A stretch of DNA of 63,957 nt, counting the filler, from Perkinsus chesapeaki ATCC PRA-425 (Eukaryota; Protista; Perkinsozoa): assembly GCA_013115145.1 (NCBI GenBank). It is 9 parts of 9 records of this genome, joined end to end, with 100 filler letters (N's around TTAATTAATTAA, not from the genome) between each part and the next. Parts side by side here need not be neighbours in the genome. Positions count along the whole stretch, not along the records: positions 7,370 to 16,885 come from JAAPAO010000933.1; 8 more parts are not named here. The stretch is one strand, 5' to 3'. Positions 4,670 to 16,885 of the stretch are shown in pieces (positions within the stretch are counted from its first letter, which is position 1; each line of letters starts with the position of its first letter). The notes under the pieces are model-generated. The model had not been told where the DNA came from, did not search any database, and worked only from the letters and a program-made list of their open reading frames with translations. Position numbers and translations under genes: made by a program.

Positions 4670-5670
4670 CTACTTACCTATTACTTGGCCCTGTACAGGC
4701 GGCAAATTCTTGGGTTGATACCGTAGAGCTTGTGCAACTTCATAATCTTCAGTACTTGTGTATGTTGGGACGAGCTCAATAATATGAAAATTTTTAGCTT
4801 GTGCCACACTGAAATCCTCCCCTTCTATAGACGATTTGACCCAGCCCGATACACTCCACTGACGAATCTTTTGTAACACTGCCGAGCAACACTGCTTAAT
4901 TTCTTGCACGTCGAACGATTGCCAAGCAGTGGCTCGTATGGCCGAGTCCTGTAGGAAATACGAGCTAAAAGTGAGACCCGTCACCACAGAACCATTGAGA
5001 TATAATTCGACTTCATCTCCTCGTTCTCCCCCAATGATATCCATGTCGCACTCAAGAGCATAGCCAGGCATTGACGGCTTGCTAACACAGCCGCAAACTG
5101 CCGTTCCTGCGGTGGTAGGTAATCTGTTACATAAAGTTCCTCCACATGTTGTCACCAGTCTGAAGCTTCATAATTTCAATTCGATTTTTTTAGATGGAAT
5201 GTACTATATGCTGTGCTATTATAAAGTAGAGGTAGAGAAGGTAGAGGCGAAGAAGCTTCATATTTCATCATTTGTTGCCGTACCCGGATAACCGGTGTCG
5301 CTTTGTTCTCATCTAAATATTGCTGTATGAACCGAGGTTCAATCAAGATTATAAGGTCACCCACTCTAAAGTTCACATCATTCAGCATCTGCTTCGTGAT
5401 ATCAGATGTCCTTAAGAATACAACACAGCATGCCGTTGAAGTAACATCACCAAGCAGGATCATCCTATCATATTCAACAGGACTCAGAGAAGGACGTCCA
5501 AGTCCACGTTTATAGGTATATAATGACATCCGTGTATTTTTATCAGCTCTGCGGATGTTTAAAAGCCGTAATGGTAGTTTAGATTGGTCACAGTCAACAC
5601 CTTGTAAAGTCTCGTTCAACGTGATGGTCTTATATGACTGAATCGTACTTAATGACAAAGACATACTCAA
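4670..5670 (-). pseudogene. Intronless orphan protein (about 330 aa, possibly OB-fold-like, Cys cluster TCGGTLC...CGC) broken by a frameshift and a stop
   Basis: ORFs 5670-5176 and 5155-4670 join if the 7-A run (5185-5191) had 8 A; one in-frame TGA (5170-5168) remains. Fold is a guess from the beta-rich pattern. Confidence 0.55.
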
Positions 5671-7369: not shown

Positions 7370-7525
7370 GTGTACGGGTTAAAAGTGGGGGTGTGTACGA
7401 AGTGAAAGTGTACGAGCTTTCGGTGTACGAGTTGAAAGTGTATTGGTTTTCGGTGTACGGGTCGTAAATGTACGAGTATTCGAGACATGAGTGGAAGGTG
7501 TACGAGTATTCGGTGTATGGGACAT
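7370..7525 (+). repeat. Degenerate about 17-nt tandem repeat with a GTGTACG(A/G) core
   Basis: About 8 GTGTAC/TGTACG cores at roughly 17-nt spacing at the contig start. Confidence 0.7.
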
Positions 7526-7645
7526 GAACACCCCTCTCAGTCTAACCCGAGGAATTCTGGGAAGTTCTCTCGGCCCAATCCGAGTCCTTCTAAGCCCTCT
7601 TCTCAGCCTGTTACTAGTGCTGTGGCCACTCCTAAGGTGAACTAA
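7502..7645 (+). CDS. Possible S/P-rich C-terminal tail of the YR element's gag-like ORF
   Basis: Open frame ...CMGHEHPSQSNPRNSGKFSRPNPSPSKPSSQPVTSAVATPKVN* ending just before the first T-rich spacer; identity inferred from position only. Confidence 0.3.
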   Translation, partial: TSIRCMGHEHPSQSNPRNSGKFSRPNPSPSKPSSQPVTSAVATPKVN

Positions 7646-7798
7646 AATATACGTGTAGTTAGTTTTGCATTTTTTTATTCTAGATTGAATAGTTTCTAAT
7701 TTAAAGGTTTTGTTAAATGTTTGTGAGTTATAGTAAGTATTTCTTAAGTTTTTTTTTCTGAATTTTTTTTCTTAGTTTTCTTATTTTTGTTTATCGCA

Positions 7799-9256
7799 AT
7801 GCCCCATAAATGTTCGTCTTCGAGTATAAAAGCTCGAAGGGAAGACTATCGTTTGAGGCGTTCAATTGCTAAGGCTACAAGATTTGCTGTCGTCGGGGCT
7901 AGTGCTGTTCTGAGTTCAGCTTTACCTGATTGTGATTCCAGAATCAGTGTTTCTTCTCAAGAAACGTTGTGCCCTTTCATGAAGTCCTATCAAGAAAATG
8001 TTGATGACTTGGTTCAGTCAGCCCAGAATTTACCACCGGTGTTAACTTTTTTTACGGATGGTTCTGGTTTACCAGACAAATGTCCTTTATCTTTGGATGG
8101 TTGTGGTTCCAGATTGCATCATTATTCCAACCCTATTACTGAGATCTTTGCATCAACTATATCGTCGTTTGGTATTGACGAGGTTTTCCAAACTATTTCT
8201 GATAATGGTGGGAGTGTGATGGATCCTGATAGTCTTCATGATATATTATCACGAGCGGCTGATACGTGTCGAAAGGTATTAGGTGATTATTTCCATATAT
8301 CTCCTACTAAAGCAGCTTGTGGGGCTGATTATTATGATACCTTATTTGTGAAATTACTGGAGAAGTCGAATGATCCGGATTCTTCTCTTCAGTCTTCAGT
8401 GTTAGATTCCGGTGGTTTGCCAGCTGGAATAGTTAATGATATTCCAAAGTCTAATATTTTGCCTGTATATACTCCTAAGTTAAATAAGATTCGTCAACAT
8501 GAACCAGAGCAAATTGTTGAAGCATTTGATTCGCATTATCGTAGTGTGGATGATGCTGGTCTTATATTATGGGAAATAGTACAACGGGATATTCGGCTGG
8601 GTCATATGCGTGATGTTACAAATGATATGGATCGTTGTACTTTTGTCAAATGTGCTATAATTGCTAAGGGTTTGGTGCCTGATGATGTTAGTTTGGCAGA
8701 TCCTTCAGTTTCGATTCGTGTGGTGGAGCAAAATGGGGTTAACCGGAAATGTGTTGATGATAATTTGTTGCATGAAACACCGTTGTTACCACGTTTGGAT
8801 GATTACAAGCGTGCTATTCTGGAGGCGAGGAAGGCTGAGCTGAAATATGGAGAGAAATGGGGCATGTTTTGTCTTGATTATTCTGGTGCGTTTAGAAATT
8901 TACCAGTTGCATTGTCGGAGAGGTCATATTTATCTATTCTATGTGGATGCCCTGATGGGAAGTTGATGGCAGCGTCTCATTCTCGATTTCCTTTCGGTCT
9001 TCGAAGTAGCCCCCTTTGGTGGGGAAGATATGCTGCAAGTCATTTACGGATTTTCCGTTGGCTTACTCGTGCATATCGTAGTATTCCAATGGTATATGTA
9101 GATGATCTTGTAATATTTGCTCCTAGAAACACTTTGTGTTTCTTAGGAGCTCTTTACACGCTAATGTTAGTTGTCCTCGGTTTCCCACTGAGTTATCCTA
9201 AACTAACGATTGGTAAAGAATCCAATAAGATCGTGGGATTTACAATGAAACTGTGA
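7799..9256 (+). CDS. Reverse transcriptase (fingers/palm) with a long N-terminal extension; ends right after the primer-grip G
   Basis: LDYSGAFRNL, RFPFGLRSSP, YVDD, YPKL..., KIVGFTMKL*; first ATG at 7799. Confidence 0.92.
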   Translation: MPHKCSSSSIKARREDYRLRRSIAKATRFAVVGASAVLSSALPDCDSRISVSSQETLCPFMKSYQENVDDLVQSAQNLPPVLTFFTDGSGLPDKCPLSLDGCGSRLHHYSNPITEIFASTISSFGIDEVFQTISDNGGSVMDPDSLHDILSRAADTCRKVLGDYFHISPTKAACGADYYDTLFVKLLEKSNDPDSSLQSSVLDSGGLPAGIVNDIPKSNILPVYTPKLNKIRQHEPEQIVEAFDSHYRSVDDAGLILWEIVQRDIRLGHMRDVTNDMDRCTFVKCAIIAKGLVPDDVSLADPSVSIRVVEQNGVNRKCVDDNLLHETPLLPRLDDYKRAILEARKAELKYGEKWGMFCLDYSGAFRNLPVALSERSYLSILCGCPDGKLMAASHSRFPFGLRSSPLWWGRYAASHLRIFRWLTRAYRSIPMVYVDDLVIFAPRNTLCFLGALYTLMLVVLGFPLSYPKLTIGKESNKIVGFTMKL

Positions 9257-9411
9257 ATTATGTTACTTACGAGTGTGTGTATCATAATGATTAGTAATAT
9301 TCTTGTGCAGTTTTCCGATTTTTTCTCTTGTGTTATTGTAAGTTGTAGTCCCTATTTGTGGAGTAGTTAATGCTGCAGTATCTTGTTTTTTCTATCTATT
9401 GTATATACTTC

Positions 9412-10191
9412 ATGGCGTCCATTTCTGTTCCAGTTGAAAAGGCGTCCATTATATGTTCTGATATTGATAGGGTTTTGAATACTGGTGTTATTGCGTTGCC
9501 TACAGCACGCAAATTGCGTGGGAGGCTACTGTGGTATGCGCAGCTTGCTCCGTATTTAAGATCATATACTGGTCCTCTCACAGCGGCTATAGTTTATATG
9601 GAGAGGTCCGGTAGACCATCTACATCTATTGGAAAGACGCTCCGTGCGGATCTGTCGTTGTGGAAAGTTCGTATATCTTCTCTGCAATGCGTAATACTTC
9701 CACAAATTGGATCGACGAAAGCGGTGTGTGCTTCTGATGCCTCGACAGTTGGTATTGGCGGTTGGATTAGTCTACCTTCAACTAATGGTGACCGACTCAC
9801 TCACTATTTTCAGTCCGGTATTGACTCTCTGCCGTATTCTTTAAAGGAGCTAATTTTATCCAATCCTGGTTCACCTCGTGCGGGTGACATAACTGCATTG
9901 GAATTACTTGCAGGCTGCTTGTCTATTTGCTTAGCGATAACCCTTGACTCGTCTCTGGGTTCAGTTATCTTGTTTTCCGACAATGATCCTTCAGTAAAAG
10001 CGTTACGTCGGTGTTATAGTTCAGCCCCAAGGGTGTCTCTCTTACTTCGTCAACTGGCTCTCTTCTTATCAGGTTTACCGATCCCTGTGTCGTATCGTAT
10101 TGAACATATACCTGGGAAGAGTAATTTTGTTGCGGACCAGTTGAGTAGACTAGGTTGTACTTCATTTATACCGCCTAACTGGGAAAAGTAA
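9412..10191 (+). CDS. RT thumb plus DIRS-type RNase H as a separate ORF
   Basis: MASISVPVEK, RKLRGRL, ASDASTVGIGG, ALELLA, LFSDN, HIPGKSNFVADQLSR; an upstream in-frame ATG at 9370 is also possible. Confidence 0.9.
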   Translation: MASISVPVEKASIICSDIDRVLNTGVIALPTARKLRGRLLWYAQLAPYLRSYTGPLTAAIVYMERSGRPSTSIGKTLRADLSLWKVRISSLQCVILPQIGSTKAVCASDASTVGIGGWISLPSTNGDRLTHYFQSGIDSLPYSLKELILSNPGSPRAGDITALELLAGCLSICLAITLDSSLGSVILFSDNDPSVKALRRCYSSAPRVSLLLRQLALFLSGLPIPVSYRIEHIPGKSNFVADQLSRLGCTSFIPPNWEK

Positions 10192-10428
10192 GATATTTCT
10201 GAGGCGTTGTTATTGCTTGATCCTTCTACATAATACTTTGTTGTCTATGACGAGATCGTTTATCGTGTGTTGGCTCTTGCACGAGTTCTATATTCGGCAA
10301 TGTTGTACATAGATTGAATCTATTTCTACTGGATGTCATAATGAACTTGGGTTTGTTGTTTGTAATTGATGATATGTACTACACCATGATCCTGTGTTAT
10401 TGGCAGGTTTCTTTCATTATAGCCATAA

Positions 10429-11517
10429 ATGCAGAATTCGGGATGGGCCCCCCTCCGGTCTCTCTCATGGCAGCCGCTTGGTGTACCCTCGGTTTCAAGT
10501 CCTCGAGTCCCTGTAAAATCTTCGGTTTCTTCTAAAGCCCAGCAAGCGGTTGTGGCTGCCTCCACATCAGATGATAATCAGTTGAAGAGTTTTGTCGCCT
10601 CTGCGTTTGCAGAAAGTACCCACAAGCAGATGCGTTCCGCATCGGTATTATATGAATCTATCTGTGGATCAAAGAATCATGATCCTTACCCAGTCAATTT
10701 GGACAAGTTACTGTTGATGGTCCACGCTATGACTCAAGCAAGCTATTCGGTTGGAACTATTCAAAAGTATATTTCTCAAATACGTAGTCAGGCATCTCGC
10801 TCCCGCCTCCTCATACTTGATGAGGTTGATTCCTCTATTGTTACTCTATCTCTCAGAGCTGCAAAGAAGGTGCTAGGCTCAGCTGTTACCCATGCGACTA
10901 CTTTATCTCGGGAGGATGTCTTCTCAGTTTCGTCAGTTTTGAGACGAACTTGCCCTGAAGCAGCAGACCTCTACCTCTTGGGGGTGTCTGGTTTATTCAG
11001 GCTCGGTGAACTACTCCAAATGGAGGCGGGTCATATTAATCCGTGTTGGCTTCCTACGGGTTCCGGTGAAATGTTTGGTATCTCAGTTTTTGTGAAAAAG
11101 TCCAAGACCGATGTTTTCTCTCGAGGTTGCTACCGCAATATTGCTTGTATCTCTGAGAGCGGTGACTCCTTTTCTTGCTCATCGGCATTTTGCTCTGCAC
11201 ACTCAATACTGATCCGTTCTAGAAGTGCTGTCTCTCCGGATGATCCGTTATTCCGAGTAACCAGGGATGCATTTTCGGGCTTACTTCGGCAAGCTATTGT
11301 AGAAGTATGCGGAGTTACCCAGAGTGGCTCCCCTACTTCCCATTCGATGAGGCGGTCTGGAGCAGTTATGTGCTTCCAGGGTGGTATGCCGCTTACACTT
11401 TTGGCTGAATATGGGCGGTGGTCCTCCACCGAGTGCCTGGATAAGATTTACCTTCGAGATGGCCCACATTCCCAACAGCTATTCAGTGCGTACGTACTCC
11501 GTGCCTGGACGAAATAA
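10429..11517 (+). CDS. Tyrosine recombinase, catalytic set intact
   Basis: GLFRLGEL (R), KKSKTD (K), HSMRRSGA (HxxR), GRW, KIY (Y); N-terminal SAM-like domain (STHKQMRS...TIQKYISQI). Confidence 0.95.
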   Translation: MQNSGWAPLRSLSWQPLGVPSVSSPRVPVKSSVSSKAQQAVVAASTSDDNQLKSFVASAFAESTHKQMRSASVLYESICGSKNHDPYPVNLDKLLLMVHAMTQASYSVGTIQKYISQIRSQASRSRLLILDEVDSSIVTLSLRAAKKVLGSAVTHATTLSREDVFSVSSVLRRTCPEAADLYLLGVSGLFRLGELLQMEAGHINPCWLPTGSGEMFGISVFVKKSKTDVFSRGCYRNIACISESGDSFSCSSAFCSAHSILIRSRSAVSPDDPLFRVTRDAFSGLLRQAIVEVCGVTQSGSPTSHSMRRSGAVMCFQGGMPLTLLAEYGRWSSTECLDKIYLRDGPHSQQLFSAYVLRAWTK

Positions 11518-11883
11518 GAACCAGGCGATTATAGTCAACCGTCGTTGATAATCAGGTTGTCGGCCATTCACATCGCCAGTGGCGATATGTTAGTTATTGT
11601 GATAGTTTCGGTGTAATACTTGTGACTTGTGTCGTGAATATGTGCCCCTCCACGCAGCACAACAGGTGTAACCCTCGCTGTTCCACCGAGGGACTGGGCC
11701 CTAAACTTAACCTTCTGTGCTCCGAGTTTGGGCAGGGGATGGCTGTAGTCACTGTGGGTTCACCCTGGGGGTCGACGATTGGCCCCCTGGGCAACCCTTG
11801 TGTGACTTGCGTTCCGTCATCGCGGTGTCAGAGTCATCGCGGCGACCGCAACGCACCCTGCCACAACTCGGAGGCCAGAGGTT

Positions 11884-13962
11884 TTACCTAGGAAAACCGC
11901 AGCGCATAAAGATAAGTACCATACCTCTAACCAAAGATTCGGCCTTGGTATCAGGAATGGGAGTGAAGTCACAGAATGCCGTATACCAGTCCGTGCAGGT
12001 CAAGAGTTTACCACCAGGACCAACATGTAGTACGTCGACTCCAACTCGTTGCCATGCTGCTGCCATACCTTCCACAGGACGCCGCGTCCCATGAGGTGCA
12101 AGCTCACGTCCTTGTTTGGTAGCAGTGACTTGGCACACCTCACAGGCTCGACAAATACCACGGCATATATTTCCCATTTTTGGAAACCAGCACCAGTCCG
12201 AAAGGAAAAACTTCAGCTGTCTTGTATTAGCATGACAGTCAGCATGAGCTTGCATCACTAGAGTCTTTCGGCAATGAACGGGAATTAGAAGTTGCTTGAC
12301 AATTCTGCCAGTAGGGCTAAACCTTTGAACCCTAAATATGACTCCATCATCGTCAGTAATAAAACCACTACCTTTCACCAACGCTTGGCATTCAGGACAA
12401 GTCTGCTGTGCCTCGCGAACCTCATCAAGATCACAATATCGGGGACACTGAAATGGCTCAATCGCTATGTCATCGTCACACTCATTATTAGTAGCAATAA
12501 TATCACTCGTCACATCATCCAGAGAGCCTAACGAGCTATCGATAATGTGCACAGGATCGTCATTAGTGATATTCCCCACAGCGAGATCCTGTGGTAGGAC
12601 TCTAGCCATTGAGTCTACAAGCGATACAACCGAGAGCCTAGGTACCCATAGGGTAACCGCAACAGTACGATGATATTCAGCTATCATCCTTAGCTCTAGC
12701 TCATCGTTAGCATGATCGTTCTCTACCGTATGCCAATAACGGTCTCCGACAGCATTGGCATTGTCTCCAATCATCACCACCGGAGAGGTGCACAATGGAA
12801 GGAACCTATGCAAGGCCAACAATTGGGCTTTCCTTTCTCGGAAGGTTGATGAACGAGCCATATCCTCTACCGTCACCAAACCACCATCGAGAGAAAGCGG
12901 GAGTAACAGACACACTTCATCGTTGGCCAGCTGAATATCAAGCTCGGAACACATCCTTAAAGCCAAGGCATCTAACGCTTGATGCCAACCAACAGCGTGA
13001 GGACCAAAGTGAGCGACTCCATCCTTCTTTACGACAAGCAGCTGGAATATAATAGCGGCCCAGGCGTCTTCATTGCAATCCACCATGATAGCTGTACCCA
13101 TAACGTGACAACCATTACCATTTCCAAGAACATAGAGGCACGCTAACCCACTCAAGTAATATCGAGCTAGCTGCTTGACTAGGGATGTTGCCTTCGAACT
13201 TCTAGGATCGACTCGTTGAAGTCTACGTAGAATAACCTTAGCATCAGGAGAAAGCCATCTTGATAGCCATTGAAACCTACCAGACCAACTTCGGATCCAG
13301 CTCTTCCTGGACTCCAAGTCATGGAACTTGCTGAAGCTTGTACAGCTTTCTTCAATGGCAGCGTCAGTCAAAGAAGGTACTTTCACTTTCGGAAAAACCT
13401 CACTTCGATAACAACGAATACCACAAAAATCAACGATATCACCAGCTTCACATTTGTTTAGTGCCACCATACAACCATACCGAGCAAACAAATCGACCAC
13501 AACTTCTTTCGCTTGTAATACACATCTCTCATTCCCCCCTCCTATCAATATGTCATCTTGAAAATGAACAAGCCGTATCGGCAAACCCATTTTTCTACAG
13601 ATGACTCTAGCTTCATCTAGAATAGAACCGACAACCCTCGAGAATAGTATCGGACTATAGCGCCATCCTTGTGGAAGAACTACACATACTCATAGGTGCT
13701 CATTACCATCTTGATCTGTGGTCCTACAAGCAAACAGAGGCCAGAGATTGCTATCGAGATGAACCGATGAGAAGGCATCGCTTAGGTCTACTTTGACGAA
13801 ATACCGTCTCATTGATGGCGGCCATAACCGTAGAATATTAAGAGCTCCATCTTGAGATTGGGTGATGTCGGTACTCCTCTTTGTGGTCTGAGCGATGTCG
13901 GACTTCATAACCCATACATAACCATCGTCTTTATCGGGTGGAGATCTCGGTACAAGCTGCAT
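11884..13962 (-). pseudogene. Pol remainder: RT, RNase H, integrase zinc finger and partial core
   Basis: KVDLSDAF; HL*VCVVLPQGWRYSP (13962 and 13590 ORFs share a frame across one TGA); HFQDD; MVDC...IGDN; HADCH...CRACEVC; VGVDV. Confidence 0.9.
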
Positions 13963-16159
13963 ACTGCTGACTCAACAGTGTTGAGCTCTCGATTTGAGAA
14001 AGCTCAACAGTGTTGAGCTTTCTCAAATCGAGAGTAACCCTAAAGCGAGCCTTAACCTCCTCATCACTCATAGTGCAGATATCCACCTGCGTTAGCGGCT
14101 TGGCTGAACCATGCTTCTTATCGACCCATACTACTTCATTAATCACTGTAGCTTCTTCAACAGTTGCCTCACGAAACTTACACTCTCGAGCTGCTATGCC
14201 GATTCTCCGATGGATAGCCATCTCACGAGTTCGGTTACGCTTCCGTCGGGGCTCGGTGAAAGGCATAACCGAAATTCCACTGAGAGCGGGACAGGAAACC
14301 ATGAATCCACTATCAGAATGCGTAATAGCGCATTGATTCCTCACATCGATAGGATGTAGAACGTCGATCTTCTCATCGTACTTGTCATGGAATGTAGTCA
14401 GGAGAGGGTCTTGAACTCTACAGGTCGTTCCATCAAGGCATTCTATCAATATCCGCTTCAGATCCACTGAACGCTTGATAGTTTCAACACCTATGATGAA
14501 ATCCGGAGACAAGCCTTCAATCACCTTGACCTCAACATTCTCCACAAGAGTAGATTTCACTTCGTTCTCAATGTTCACTTTGAAGCAACCAAGTACTTGA
14601 GCACACTCACCGTTACCAAATTTAACGTTGCTACAAGAGTTGAGGGATTCACCAATTATATCCGCCGCCACCATCTCTCTAAACAAACCGGCATTGATAT
14701 ATGCAGAACCATATCCGCCAGTATCAAGTAGGGCAGGAAGTTTAGCAGCATAACCAATATCACCATTTGCTTGCCTTATTATGAGGTCCACAGTACATGC
14801 ACTGTCTCCTGCAAGAGCCAGTACATCACCAACAACACCAAGATTCTCAAACCGTTTACTATCAGCGCTGTTAGCAGAGGGAACCTCCTTCTCAGCCTGA
14901 GGTTTAGCAGCTGAAGCAGGAACTGAATTTTGGGACGTATCTGACTGAGTCGTCGAAGTGCTCGAAGGGGGCGCCGCAGTAGTCGACCGTAAAACAGGAC
15001 AGTTACGTCGTAAATGTGGGCCGTCACAATGCCAGCATCGGAGGGGTCTCTTTGATCTAAACGTTCTCGGACCATTCACTTCAGCTTGTGAACTGGAAGG
15101 GACTTCTGCAGAGACATTAATAGTTGCTGGAGTAGGCACTGGAGCCGCTTGTGCAGGTTGATCTTCATCCACAACAGCATTCACTGTGGAGTCTGTACCT
15201 GCATTGGCTCCCTCCCACAAAGTCAATTTAGAACATAGGTCATTAACATCCCTCACGTGAGAGTAGGTAGCCTTGACCGTCTTCTGATAGTTAGGCTTCA
15301 AACCTTTAATGAACTTATCCAAGATCTCGTCTTGAGTTACAGACAAACCAATACATTTGCCTTCCATAATTCCTTCTCGTAAACGGCCAATATAATCACC
15401 AATTGGCTCATTACTACGTTGCTTAACCTGTGCCAGGCGATTTCGGTAGCGAATACTATCATTTGTTACATCAAAAGCTGACCGTAAGAAGCTCTCAGCA
15501 GCAATGAGACGATCCTCTATCGAACCCTCCAATAGCAAGTGTTTCTCCTCAAGGATATCGGTCAATTCACTCGTAACACTTTGAGAAAGACACCTTAAAA
15601 GAAACCGCCAGCAGTTATCAGGAGAGAGTCCATATAGTTTACATGTCTGCAGCCATTCACGTAGAAAGAAAGAAACAGGTCTTGGGTCACTTCTTCCCGA
15701 GAATAACTTGCCACCAGCAGGCAATGGCAGTGTAGACACCACTCCCATAGATCTCACATTAGTAGCTTCATCAGTCAGAGTTTGCCTATCAAAATGATAG
15801 TCAGCTGCACTAACAGTGTCATTGCGGCTGGTTTCTGAGGGAGCAACATCTTCTGGAAGATGTACATGATATCTACTCACATTGCCGTCGGGGTGACCTC
15901 GTTGCAAATGTCTAGCACTAGTCGCCTTAGTAGATGTGAACGTGTACCAAAGATGTCGCAAGTGCAACATCTTATTAGCATCTTCACCAGAAACTTTACC
16001 AATCAGCAAATCAACCTCATCTTGACGAAGATAAATGACATAACGTGCGTCCAAACCAGTTGCTTCGGCAAACTCCTGGCGGGCAGTCTCCTCCGATAAA
16101 TCATCAATCCTGCATCGGGTACCAATGTGATGATTTCCCTCTTGACTTAACAAAACCAT
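13931..16159 (-). CDS. Gag - zinc knuckle - aspartic protease - start of RT
   Basis: CWHCDGPHLRRNC knuckle, LLDTG, DFIIG, RVTLDLRKLN. Confidence 0.9.
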   Translation of the reverse strand: MVLLSQEGNHHIGTRCRIDDLSEETARQEFAEATGLDARYVIYLRQDEVDLLIGKVSGEDANKMLHLRHLWYTFTSTKATSARHLQRGHPDGNVSRYHVHLPEDVAPSETSRNDTVSAADYHFDRQTLTDEATNVRSMGVVSTLPLPAGGKLFSGRSDPRPVSFFLREWLQTCKLYGLSPDNCWRFLLRCLSQSVTSELTDILEEKHLLLEGSIEDRLIAAESFLRSAFDVTNDSIRYRNRLAQVKQRSNEPIGDYIGRLREGIMEGKCIGLSVTQDEILDKFIKGLKPNYQKTVKATYSHVRDVNDLCSKLTLWEGANAGTDSTVNAVVDEDQPAQAAPVPTPATINVSAEVPSSSQAEVNGPRTFRSKRPLRCWHCDGPHLRRNCPVLRSTTAAPPSSTSTTQSDTSQNSVPASAAKPQAEKEVPSANSADSKRFENLGVVGDVLALAGDSACTVDLIIRQANGDIGYAAKLPALLDTGGYGSAYINAGLFREMVAADIIGESLNSCSNVKFGNGECAQVLGCFKVNIENEVKSTLVENVEVKVIEGLSPDFIIGVETIKRSVDLKRILIECLDGTTCRVQDPLLTTFHDKYDEKIDVLHPIDVRNQCAITHSDSGFMVSCPALSGISVMPFTEPRRKRNRTREMAIHRRIGIAARECKFREATVEEATVINEVVWVDKKHGSAKPLTQVDICTMSDEEVKARFRVTLDLRKLNTVELSQIESSTLLSQQYAACTEISTR

Positions 16160-16270
16160 TGTTAGAGGGATACGGAGGAGGACTTCTTAACATAAAAGGA
16201 ATATTACGTGTTACAGAAGGCTAGTGAGAACAGGTATTGCGCAGCTTAGCTCATAATACATCACACAATT

Positions 16271-16282
16271 GAGGGACAACCA
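16271..16282 (-). promoter_or_regulatory. Putative primer binding site TGGTTGTCCCTC
   Basis: TGG-initial motif 1 nt after the LTR end and about 110 nt before the gag ATG; priming tRNA not identified. Confidence 0.55.
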
Positions 16283-16283
16283 T

Positions 16284-16615
16284 TGTGTAACATCAACAGC
16301 TCCCTCAGTTCACTACAGTTTTACGCCAAATTTCGGTTTTGCCGATCACGACGGATCGGATGGACTCAGAGGTCTGTTACCTAAAATCTAATCATCTCTT
16401 AAGGTCATGTTTCGTCCTCACCACAAGGACTCATCAGTGGCTAACAGTGCCAGACACACCTTAAGTGCACCCCATACAGGTGGTTATCCAATTTACCCAC
16501 AGGTATGGTACCTAACCCTAGAAATTCACTATCATTAAGGAAGCAATTCCAGTATAGGTCTGTTACCAGGATAACAACGATGCGTAATAAGGTATGAAAT
16601 CAGCTGACCGCCACA
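16284..16615 (-). repeat. LTR (about 332 bp) with TGTG...CACA termini
   Basis: On the minus strand it starts TGTGGCGG right after the PPT GGGGGAA and ends TGTTACACA one base before TGGTTGTCCCTC; only one copy is visible, so boundaries rest on these signals. Confidence 0.7.
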
Positions 16616-16885
16616 TTCCCCCATTACTACACCTTTTTAACATCAAGTTCGCACTTAGGAACATCAATTTCGTCTCGACGGGCGAATTTGAGCGCACGAA
16701 TCTGAAACGGAAAGATCCACTTCGCCGTTAGGATTTTCAATTTCGCCATAGGATTGCATCCCTTTTGCGGAACTCTGAGGATTGCGTGGCTGCCTACAAT
16801 ACATCAGCTCCCGTAAGCTCTGTTGATATTTTCCTGAGCCATGCATGGTCTGACAGCGGTTGGTGGAAACAGGCTGCACTTTTAA
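16616..16885 (-). mobile_element. 3' end of an upstream Gypsy copy: integrase GPY/F tail and polypurine tract
   Basis: 16797-16627 reads VGSHAILRVP...AKLKILTAKWIFPFQI...KKV*; then GGGGGAA PPT at 16622-16616. Confidence 0.7.

Follow-up and report, generated by a model that had tools for sequence, protein, structure and literature searches.

Retroelements code compactly, through overlapping ORFs, frameshifts, read-through and polyproteins, the usual reason being that several proteins must come from one capped RNA, and it is by frameshifting, read-through or overlapping ORFs that they set the Gag:Pol ratio. In the known tyrosine-recombinase (YR) elements, reverse transcriptase (RT) and RNase H (RH) are encoded in one ORF, and the ORFs are "frequently extensively overlapped" (PMC6681497; PMC3266345). 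Ngaro-like elements (order DIRS) follow the order gag - RT/RNase H - YR, lack a methyltransferase, a protease and a DDE integrase, and carry B1-A2-B2 split direct repeats; DIRS1 has a Ty3-like RT/RNase H and a YR together with a methyltransferase, inverted terminal repeats plus an internal complementary region, and overlapping ORFs. VIPER/TATE are three-ORF YR retrotransposons, ordered gag - YR - RT/RH with an unbroken RT-RH, whose hosts use polycistronic transcription, SL trans-splicing and polyadenylation for all mRNAs (PMC6681497). They are phylogenetically unrelated to the Perkinsus host lineage, and in the VIPER/TATE literature that we searched, neither SL-resolved element mRNAs nor a split RT was found described. 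In the SL-resolved operons of nematodes and trypanosomatids and in dinoflagellate gene arrays, all of them made of host genes, the downstream cistron receives its SL at a pyrimidine-AG and poly(A) is added shortly before the next acceptor. From Perkinsus itself, a genus of parasites of oysters, one DIRS1-like entry is on record, for P. marinus, with "GenBank 2010" as its sole reference (PMC3266345).

The element described here lies on the plus strand at 7520-11890 of the window, the whole 63,957-nt stretch analysed, which comes from Perkinsus chesapeaki ATCC PRA-425 (GCA_013115145.1, hereafter "this genome") and along which all coordinates run. It is a YR retrotransposon truncated at its 5' end, with four ORFs that do not overlap: a gag tail, RT fingers-palm (open frame from 7787), thumb plus RNase H (open frame from 9370) and YR (Table 1). 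An ORF scan placed these where the initial annotation had them, including the RT end at KIVGFTMKL-stop and the next start, MASISVPVEK, at 9412; the annotated span of 7645-11517 held for the ORFs but not for the 3' boundary, as the element runs on to ~11890. The gag tail annotated as ending at 7645 was recovered in part, in that ~7520-7645 is gag-like through a weak, low-complexity match (SGKFSRPNPSP.. versus PSKFSRPQSQP.. in the sister element L077), but neither the remainder of gag nor the 5' terminus is present: a tandem repeat, closed by stops in every frame, occupies 7370-7520, and the window copy is therefore without gag. No second near-identical copy was found in the assembly. Pfam matches comprise RVT_1 (E 6e-6), RVT_3 (weakly) and Phage_integrase, the last missing the Pfam cut-off, and the catalytic motifs are intact, as had been noted from the window alone: RT D161 and Y234-x-D236-D237 (YVDD) are invariant in the family alignment, as are RNase H D109, D190 and D242, with E164 near-invariant to complete the DEDD set.

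Table 1. Features of the window element and of its ORF3 transcript (window coordinates)
Feature	Coordinates	Strand	Basis or signals
gag-like ORF1, C-terminal tail	7520-7645	+	frame to TAA 7643-5 resembles L077 gag C-end
Spacer 1, T-rich	7646-7798	+	predicted trans-splice acceptor AG 7774-5
ORF2, basic N-terminus, ~200-aa family-specific N-domain, RT fingers/palm	7799-9256	+	Pfam, profile
Spacer 2, between RT and thumb-RNase H ORFs	9257-9411	+	holds SL acceptor AG 9377-8 seen in cDNA
ORF3, first strand past primer grip, helical thumb, RNase H	9412-10191	+	HMM, AlphaFold, Foldseek
ORF3 monocistronic mRNA: SL, 33-nt 5'UTR, ORF3, 142-nt 3'UTR, poly(A)	9379-10333	+	cDNA contigs
Minor internal SL acceptor AG in ORF3	9963-9964	+	X2 contig 9963-10333
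Spacer 3	10192-10428	+	poly(A) site 10333; predicted YR acceptors AG 10405-6, 10421-2
ORF4, tyrosine recombinase	10429-11517	+	Pfam Phage_integrase E 0.004; R..HxxR..Y by direct reading
3' non-coding tail	11518-11890	+	35-nt match to L077 repeat end

The order gag - RT/RH - YR, without a protease, a DDE integrase or a methyltransferase (no Pfam match to the latter in the window element), is that of Ngaro-like elements, though here RT/RH occupies two ORFs. A YR in place of a DDE integrase is conserved across all sister elements and comes last in each of the five lineages that share the split RT, which differs from the VIPER-like order. The Ty3-like RT/RNase H and the YR are shared with DIRS1, but the element is not DIRS1-like in the strict sense: neither a methyltransferase nor inverted terminal repeats, an internal complementary region or overlapping ORFs were seen, and ORF3 stops 237 nt before the YR ATG. 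At the 3' end, the last 35 nt of the tail (11852-11886, ..CTCGGAGGCCAGAGGTTTTA..) are 85.7% identical by blastn to the end of a 162-nt direct repeat that L077 carries twice at its own 3' end (9154-9318 and 9543-9707, spaced 389 nt), a doubling that recalls the B1-A2-B2 arrangement; no A1 repeat was found in L077, nor any terminal repeats in C22 or C2870, two further sister elements. A gypsy-like ORF on the minus strand terminates at 11884. The element is best explained as belonging to a clade of Ngaro-like YR retrotransposons that is specific to Perkinsus and has four separate cistrons; it differs from known YR elements in these cistrons, their fast-evolving spacers of 80-240 nt and the broken RT.

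The RT break is common to four other lineages with 38-53% amino acid identity to the window element. The five split lineages (the window element, C22 and C2870 in this genome; L077-79 in GCA_013115135.1 and others; L076 in P. marinus) are 38-65% identical in pairwise comparison and span at least three genome assemblies; the nearest relatives of the window element are in Perkinsus assemblies, and three of these assemblies annotate the region as genes of 387, 491, 211 and 415 aa. The RT stop falls at one alignment column in four of the five lineages, with RT ending in ..GF(T/N/L)xxx-stop, and all five have the RT ORF, a variable spacer (81-225 nt, with no alignment possible between lineages) and an ATG-initiated ORF3 (M..SISVP, ISISVP, SITVP, SISVPP or IVSVP), as well as a conserved ORF2 start (M-P/A/T-x-K-R/C-S..). 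The stop, spacer and ATG first remarked at the window locus are thus kept in four further lineages, all of them split, and none has a continuous RT-RH ORF. The split elements are monophyletic, with support of 100/99 in both trees (RT and RH); their sister group is the unbroken L036+L038, and the clade is embedded in relatives whose RT-RH frame is continuous. The two trees are congruent. Across gag, RT, RH and YR, pN is 0.25-0.47 versus a saturated pS of 0.69-0.83; ORF4 is 45-54% identical to the YR of C22 and L077 (pN 0.36-0.43, pS ~0.76-0.81). The split layout is ancient, arose once and has been maintained by purifying selection in five lineages. Throughout the family in this genome, pol and YR are non-overlapping with spacers of ~95-240 nt, and the sole readable gag-pol junction of the family (L006) has a spacer of ~300 nt, indicating that the operon-like organisation is older than the RT split.

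Spacers 1, 2 and 3 of the window element measure 153, 155 and 237 nt, and the AGs that the initial annotation had placed after T-rich sequence near each ATG were borne out on reading the sequence, at 7774-5, 9377-8 and 10421-2, or 23, 33 and 6 nt ahead of the ATGs. Pyrimidines make up 11 of the 12 bases ahead of AG 7774-5, with no ATG between it and 7799, and 10 of the 12 ahead of AG 10421-2. Over 13 spacers in five elements, a pyrimidine-AG stands ahead of every ATG, with a score sum of 122 versus 85.7 +/- 12.6 after shuffling (0/2000) and reached by 0/20000 resamples of internal ATGs; by this sequence measure the signal exceeds chance. The corresponding SL junctions at 7776 and 10423 are predicted ones.

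For ORF3 there are also RNA data, consisting of cDNA contigs from RT-PCR libraries (runs including X1 and X2), which cover the ORF3 region of the window element only and can give neither strand nor abundance. An X2 contig at 9377-9849 has CCGTAGCCATTTTGGCTCA directly 5' of it, so that the SL is joined at AG 9377-8 and the exon begins at 9379, precisely the junction that had been predicted there. Contigs at 9386-10333 (X1) and 9963-10333 (X2) continue into A12-13 after 10333, where the genome reads TGTCAT, and the poly(A) tail is thus untemplated; it lies inside spacer 3, 88 nt ahead of AG 10421-2, as in SL-resolved operons. ORF3 of the window copy is therefore present as a discrete cDNA with an SL at AG 9377-8 and poly(A) at 10333, its 5'UTR containing zero ATGs. 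Because this copy is without gag, what drives its transcription may lie outside the element. The shorter X2 contig is itself preceded by TCCGTAGCCATTTTGGCTCA, but at a depth of 2.8 versus 19.4 at the main site, and AG 9963-9964 is probably a cryptic by-product.

In the contigs the SL letters spell canonical DinoSL (CCATTTTGG), whereas the genome's own SL is CCATCTTGG; the host genome holds 30 matches of the PmaSL1 type, a Perkinsus SL whose sequence was taken from PMC3101222, versus 0 in the control. The letters therefore come from the PCR primer, and they prove amplifiability with an SL primer rather than the native 5' sequence. There is little likelihood of mispriming at AG 9377-8, where the contiguous match is limited to the last 2 nt and 5/8 nt match overall. 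All eight runs with matches, which stem from two studies and several labelled organisms, contain only the ~950-nt ORF3 cDNA, whose identity in the four runs examined is 99.7-100%. One cDNA in so many settings suggests carry-over of a single product; the libraries are possibly not independent, and the RNA evidence may amount to a single observation.

That the SL letters are primer-derived, and that one cDNA recurs in eight small libraries from two studies, would suit an alternative that we consider unlikely but the strongest of those weighed, in which the downstream ORFs are translated off full-length RNA (by reinitiation, leaky scanning, internal entry or from internal promoters) and the SL-cDNA arose as an artefact of PCR or contamination, or else through promiscuous trans-splicing as a minor by-product. 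The internal site at 9963-4, clearly non-productive, shows in the same sense that trans-splicing or priming can strike cryptic AGs, and of the 13 pyrimidine tracts, the one at the acceptor found in cDNA, AG 9377-8, is the weakest (6/12). However, the untemplated poly(A) sits exactly where ORF3 has ended and the acceptor predicted next has not been reached, and a start 33 nt ahead of the ATG suits a processed monocistronic mRNA. Pyrimidine-AGs precede all 13 ATGs in a host that trans-splices SL, and reinitiation would have to bridge stop-containing spacers of 80-240 nt, a long distance for that mechanism.

ORF2 terminates directly after the primer grip (..VGFTMKL-stop), its profile aligning to Ty3 RT residues 72-264 (E 2e-8), and ORF3 takes up the remainder, matching the HIV-1 thumb (248-275) and Ty3 RNase H in HMM comparisons. 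In Foldseek, the AlphaFold model of ORF3 (pLDDT 93.4) matches Ty3 RT (4ol8_B) best, over 246 columns, and after it CaMV RT and RNase H1. The cut falls between the primer-grip strand (...FLGYSI in Ty3 RT, residue 264) and the part made up of a strand and the thumb helices (HIV-1 RT 248-275); no residues are missing at the break in alignments to relatives with an unbroken frame, and ORF2 and ORF3 jointly match the Ty3 RT fold. Co-folding ORF2(200-485) with ORF3 gave an ipSAE of 0.41 against 0.03 for the best control, with 90% or more of the contacts shared between runs and a partner pLDDT of 79; the score is weak, the mark for weak support being reached by 51/78 solved complexes and 2/108 mismatched pairs, and scores of 0.60 or below occurring in only 5/78. 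From these models we infer that the two proteins may assemble into a two-subunit RT. The Ty3 RT homodimer and HIV-1 RT p66/p51 (structures 4ol8 and 1rtd) are also two-chain retroelement RTs, but their chains come from one gene, via dimerisation or proteolysis, whereas the Perkinsus fingers-palm and thumb-RNase H chains come from two genes and would need to complement each other.

It is very improbable that a cis-intron, stop read-through or frameshift instead yields one conventional RT-RNase H protein. The window does offer in-frame GT..AG pairs (donor 9213/acceptor 9433; donor 9233/acceptor 9378), but both candidate introns would remove the near-invariant primer-grip G-F motif, and one also the first strand of ORF3; as originally reported, no GT-AG intron rejoins the frames while sparing the primer grip. 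Nor is a GT conserved at the RT stop, where C2870 reads CTCTGAATT. Recoding finds some footing in L077, where 27 open in-frame codons lead from the RT TGA into ORF3 and read-through is thus possible, and in the three copies from this genome, where ORF3 lies at -1 to the RT frame in every case. However, in-frame stops stand 0 (C22) and 14 (window, TAG 9364-6) codons ahead of the ORF3 ATG, and a frame relation of -1, -1, -1, 0, and 0 with stops between fits no single recoding rule. The ORF3 ATG is conserved in 5/5 lineages, and the mapped cDNA contigs, whose coverage starts at 9377, contain no cis-joints.

Still less credible is domestication of ORF3 at the window locus as a host thumb-RNase H gene with no role in transposition: only ORF3 is visible as cDNA, and the copy is without gag, but the neighbouring ORF2 and ORF4 are intact, the RH tree is congruent with that of RT, and the four-gene unit recurs at other loci and in other species. 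Decay of a dead copy by a private nonsense mutation and insertion, which the 5' truncation and single occurrence of the window copy might have suggested, is refuted by the sister lineages, as the identical break occurs in five lineages of 38-65% identity from at least three assemblies and every ORF of the window copy is intact with pN far below pS.

The best explanation, to which we assign a probability of about 0.72, is an ancient four-cistron layout with an SL-processed ORF3 mRNA, together with a proposed precursor, further proposed mRNAs and a proposed two-subunit RT. The whole element would be transcribed as a single precursor, from which host SL trans-splicing and coupled polyadenylation would release capped monocistronic ORF2, ORF3 and ORF4 mRNAs, while unprocessed RNA would serve as gag mRNA and genomic template; the ORF2 and ORF3 proteins would then form a non-covalent two-subunit RT/RNase H. 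Unlike the host genes of SL-resolved operons, a mobile element needs unprocessed RNA to survive as RT template, and with the precursor either kept or processed, processing efficiency would set the Gag:Pol ratio. Extended to the clade as a whole, this becomes a reading that we favour by a small degree: expression control would have been handed to the host SL machinery, which leaves the precursor whole or cuts it, and freedom from polyprotein logic would have made it possible to split RT between primer grip and thumb, the subunits reassembling. A full-text literature search did not find expression of a retrotransposon by its own SL-capped mRNAs together with a split RT described; if the clade-wide reading is true, these elements would have, as far as that search shows, the first split-gene RT found in nature among eukaryotic retroelements and would represent the first "retrotransposon operon".

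A Perkinsus lineage of retrotransposons, in a host that trans-splices SL, thus appears to have dropped the logic of compact coding and become an operon. If confirmed, the element would provide a natural test of where an RT tolerates a cut (palm versus thumb-RNase H), useful for split-RT engineering, and would warn annotators that "orphan" Perkinsus genes of 211-491 aa are pieces of one element. It would likewise mean that host RNA processing reshapes the architecture of mobile elements, and would give a concrete function to SL trans-splicing in Perkinsozoa, whose role there has been called obscure (PMC9399869).

The YR retrotransposon lies on contig C3430 of the 41.7-Mb assembly (window 7370-16885), and ORF calls, sequence reading and Pfam agree with the initial annotation on where its ORFs and their preceding AGs stand. 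Of the putative gag tail ending at 7645, the part from ~7520 onward does resemble a gag C-terminus, but what lies upstream of it is a tandem repeat rather than gag. Because that repeat carries stops and only ~7520-7645 is gag-like, the window copy has lost gag together with its 5' end; the repeat stands in place of the gag body, and may be the reason that the contig ends there. At its 3' side the element extends to ~11890; there, it shares a 35-nt motif with the repeat that a related element has at its 3' end. No ITR or A1/A2 pair was found in loci L073, L074 and L077, the sole terminal-repeat-like feature being a 162-nt repeat present in two copies at the 3' end of L077. Next to the YR element is a frameshifted Ty3/gypsy-like LTR-type element (window 11884-16159, minus strand), whose integrase core breaks off at ~11884-11890, exactly at the 3' end of the YR element; one of the two seems to have inserted into the other.

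Features of the YR retrotransposon and of the adjoining Ty3/gypsy-like element, in window coordinates
Feature	Position or length	Strand	Remarks
Tandem repeat	7370-7520		15/30-nt period, unit GTGTACGAG..; contig edge to gag-like tail; stops in every frame
Gag-like tail	~7520-7645	+	resembles gag C-terminus; ends at 7645
ORF2 (RT fingers-palm)	ATG 7799 to 9256	+	Pfam RVT_1
ORF3 (thumb + RNase H)	ATG 9412 to 10191	+	Pfam weak RVT_3 (RNase H-like); extra in-frame ATG upstream, 9370
ORF4 (YR)	10429-11517	+	Pfam Phage_integrase
Spacers 1, 2, 3	153, 155, 237 nt	+	between neighbouring ORFs
Pyrimidine-preceded AGs	7774-5, 9377-8, 10421-2	+	sequence reading
Gypsy-like gag and protease region	within 11884-16159	-	742-aa ORF; Retrotrans_gag, weak
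Gypsy-like RT fragment	13690-13962	-	different frame
Gypsy-like RT end, RNase H, integrase zinc finger	within 11884-16159	-	568-aa ORF; Integrase_H2C2

The position of the break was read from separate alignments of ORF2 and ORF3 against 14 relatives from the same genome, each with one unbroken RT-RNase H frame of 680-770 aa. The ORF2 terminus (..VGFTMKL) shares a column with ..LGF-x-V/L of the unbroken relatives, the ORF3 start ((M)ASISVPVEK) aligns to their ..I/S-I-x-V/I-P-x-x-K, and the only difference at the break is a loop of 3-8 residues. In profile comparison, the ORF2 part aligns with Ty3 RT residues 72-264, the match stopping at FLGYSI. ORF3 matches the HIV-1 thumb helix (RT 248-275) over positions 23-50 of its profile and Ty3 RNase H at its C-terminal end. 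Its AlphaFold model (pLDDT 93.4) combines a single strand and four helices with an RNase H fold, with Ty3 RT ranked first by Foldseek (246 columns), and the catalytic residues of both RT and RNase H are invariant across the family alignments. Alignment, profiles, predicted fold and catalytic residues thus point to an enzyme cut cleanly between palm and thumb, with nothing missing.

A DNA search of the genome itself returned no second near-identical copy, so the comparison of copies rested on divergent lineages; the sole other DNA-level match in the assembly is a 283-nt fragment, 91% identical (L002, G000:C2072:18956-19238), that corresponds to window 8363-8645 in the N-domain of ORF2. Conservation of the RT stop, the spacer and the ORF3 ATG in other copies and Perkinsus assemblies, on which the initial annotation had staked the split, was borne out in four further lineages. 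C22 and C2870, both in this genome, share the four-ORF arrangement and are 38-45% identical to the window element in RT and RH. The RT ORF terminates in ..GFTLVV* in C22 and ..GFNMSL* in C2870, and the ORF3 starts are MPGSDVQISISVP and MAIGESKLTSITVP, respectively. A homologous-protein search with ORF3 gave no match at E<=1e-5. By exhaustive protein search, its nearest relatives anywhere are short stand-alone proteins on contigs from Perkinsus assemblies, with four annotated genes (387, 491, 211 and 415 aa) in GCA_013115135.1, GCA_013115865.1 and GCA_013115895.1, and a decayed copy in P. marinus (GCA_000006405.1) retains the spacer and the start MPIVSVP. Across the five lineages, the window element included, spacer 2 has lengths of 155, 86, about 190, 81 and 225 nt and defies alignment, except that C22 and C2870 share a short alignable stretch surrounding an AG. 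In C2870 (L074, reverse-complement 4923-4970), ORF3 starts MAIGESKLTSITVPP and then meets a frameshift in a C/A homopolymer run, attributable to a lesion private to this copy or else to faulty assembly.

Maximum-likelihood trees built separately from the RT and RH portions agree with each other: both group the four intact split elements together (100/99), place two unbroken elements as their sister and set this clade within the family. Between lineages, pS is 0.69-0.83 (saturated) versus pN of 0.25-0.47 for gag, RT, RH and YR; since dS is saturated elsewhere, the sole usable dN/dS is that of C22 versus C2870 RH, at 0.17. The shared break, the single clade and a pN well under pS show, by sequence comparison, that the split has long been transmitted under purifying selection, and this removes private decay of the window copy as an explanation. 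In all lineages a conserved basic motif, M-P/A/T-x-K-R/C-S...K-A-R-R, stands exactly at the ORF2 ATG, which argues for independent initiation of ORF2 over a gag fusion. Two public gene models from Perkinsus assemblies (P0004 and P0007) splice pieces of the element together, joining RT palm to thumb with YVDD skipped and RNase H to YR; these joints are probably prediction artefacts due to the unusual four-cistron layout.

Among ways of rejoining the two halves, read-through to a fused protein is possible for L077 alone among the lineages: there (GCA_013115135.1 JABANP010000497.1, 6719-6805), the RT TGA is followed by 27 same-frame open codons up to the ORF3 ATG, an open stretch with a chance of about 0.27. 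Relative to RT, the ORF3 frame is -1 in every one of this genome's three copies and 0 in both L077 and P. marinus, the latter having stops in between, and an in-frame stop precedes the ORF3 ATG immediately in C22 and by 14 codons in the window. Given these differing frames and stops, no single frameshift or read-through rule fits, and the -1 relation as a recoding signal fails in L077 and L076 (the P. marinus locus). Candidate cis-introns, assessed by hand, were rejected: the only AGs between the RT stop and the conserved SISVP of the window are 9362-3, 9365-6 and 9377-8 (the next is 9432-3), and donor/acceptor pairs 9213/9433 and 9233/9378 keep the frame but remove the near-invariant primer-grip G-F, while donor 9253 (a GT inside the stop) is out of frame with acceptors 9363, 9366 and 9378 alike. 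C2870 has no GT at its RT stop. Sequence reading thus sustains the earlier observation that no GT-AG intron rejoins the frames with the primer-grip motif kept.

A run search with a 4-kb query found eight small cDNA libraries from two studies, covering 11-19% of the query; in the four examined, all coverage is confined to 9377-10333. In X2 (a 454 'RT-PCR' metatranscriptome), one contig spans 9377-9849 with zero mismatches and is preceded by CCGTAGCCATTTTGGCTCA, a 22-nt leader whose terminal AG is the genomic AG 9377-8. The exon therefore starts at 9379, precisely where an SL junction had been predicted for ORF3. Contigs of X1 and X2 match the genome up to 10333 and then run into 12-13 A where the genome has TGTCAT, which marks the tail as a post-transcriptional addition. 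The resulting mRNA of 955 nt comprises SL, a 33-nt ATG-free leader, ORF3 and a 142-nt 3'UTR, with the 9370 ATG removed, and its poly(A) site lies 88 nt ahead of the next predicted acceptor. Identical internal pieces occur in X3 and X7, from the other study. A shallower second X2 contig begins likewise at AG 9963-4, a cryptic site within ORF3.

The PmaSL1 leader ACCGTAGCCATCTTGGCTCAAG (PMC3101222) has 30 matches in the genome versus 0 in a reversed control (native PmaSL1/2 sequences are CCATCTTGG / CCATCTGG), and at the variable position none of the 30 has the T of DinoSL. The leader sequence on the contigs is hence that of a DinoSL PCR primer, and what the contig shows is a 5' end amplifiable by SL primer. 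Mispriming at AG 9377-8 could have produced the same cDNA but is improbable, as the priming site shares only the 3' AG with the primer (5/8 nt matching). The same cDNA, and nothing else of the element, recurs in eight very small libraries that are labelled with several different organisms; this looks like carry-over of one product, and we therefore count the cDNA evidence, which carries no strand or abundance information, as about one observation.

Acceptor-like signals extend beyond ORF3: when the 45 nt ahead of each ATG were scanned in 13 spacers from five lineages, the best AG had a mean of 9.4 pyrimidines in the 12 bases before it, and the score sum of 122 was reached in 0/2000 shuffles (mean 85.7, sd 12.6) and 0/20000 resamples of internal ATGs from the same ORFs. 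None of the three window spacers has an ATG between the start-proximal AG and the ORF start. No SL relics occur inside the fetched YR-element loci. In P. marinus (L076, GG672728.1), two SL-like 16-mers (GCAATCTTGGCTCAAG and GCAATCGTGGCTCAAG, + strand ~2434 and ~12376) lie on the strand opposite to the decayed YR element that they flank, ~9.9 kb apart, each with ~50 nt of conserved sequence downstream. Elsewhere in the genome under study, ten exact 21-nt SL copies were inspected (L063-L072; e.g., C8:829, C8:7019): six lack a following GT, with a short leader and then an ATG in its stead, several share conserved sequence on both sides, and copies repeat ~6 kb apart on one strand (pairs on C61, C919 and C2061, 5.7-6.6 kb). 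They resemble relics of the leader within a repeated unit, one retroposed or carried by a retroelement, rather than genes for SL RNA, and BLAST found no similarity of the ORFs that they precede to the element's proteins.

The element thus has four cistrons, a conserved split and one ORF3 cDNA bounded by SL and poly(A); resolution of the polycistron by SL trans-splicing, as first proposed, is supported by that cDNA for ORF3 and plausible for the remaining cistrons. One precursor RNA would either be left intact, serving as gag mRNA and template, or be cut into separate ORF2, ORF3 and ORF4 mRNAs by SL trans-splicing with polyadenylation coupled to it, with protein ratios set by processing efficiency. 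The ORF2 (N-domain, fingers, palm) and ORF3 (thumb, RNase H) products would then associate, for which the prior is high because both are adjacent domains of one enzyme. Co-folding lends this association weak support: ipSAE was 0.41 (0.40-0.42 over three runs sharing at least 90% of contacts; partner pLDDT 79) versus 0.03 for the best control, on a scale where the mark is reached by 51/78 solved complexes and 2/108 mismatched pairs, and scores of 0.60 or below by only 5 of the 78.

YR-element ORFs are described as 'frequently extensively overlapped', with RT/RH as one ORF, and P. marinus appears in that review literature only as a GenBank entry (PMC6681497; PMC3266345). The full-text literature searched (Repbase and subscription journals lying outside its coverage) described neither a retrotransposon whose RT is split nor element cistrons resolved by SL trans-splicing. 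Its closest statements are that transcripts of schistosome retrotransposons 'might bear the SL' (PMC5832876) and that trypanosome L1Tc produces unspliced transcripts (PMC1874656). Gene order and absence of a methyltransferase are Ngaro-like; unlike DIRS1, the Perkinsus element is without methyltransferase and overlapping ORFs, no ITRs were found, and it differs from VIPER, whose order is gag-YR-RT/RH. We class it as a YR retrotransposon that is unusual in its expression strategy and has a split-gene RT. Among ~50 YR-element pol genes in this genome, pol and YR are non-overlapping, with spacers of ~95-240 nt, in 11/11 inspected loci (from ten unbroken elements), and the one readable gag|pol junction (L006) has a spacer of ~300 nt. 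Judging by these spacers, an operon-like layout seems to be general among Perkinsus YR elements, with the fission of RT from RH a further step, taken once.
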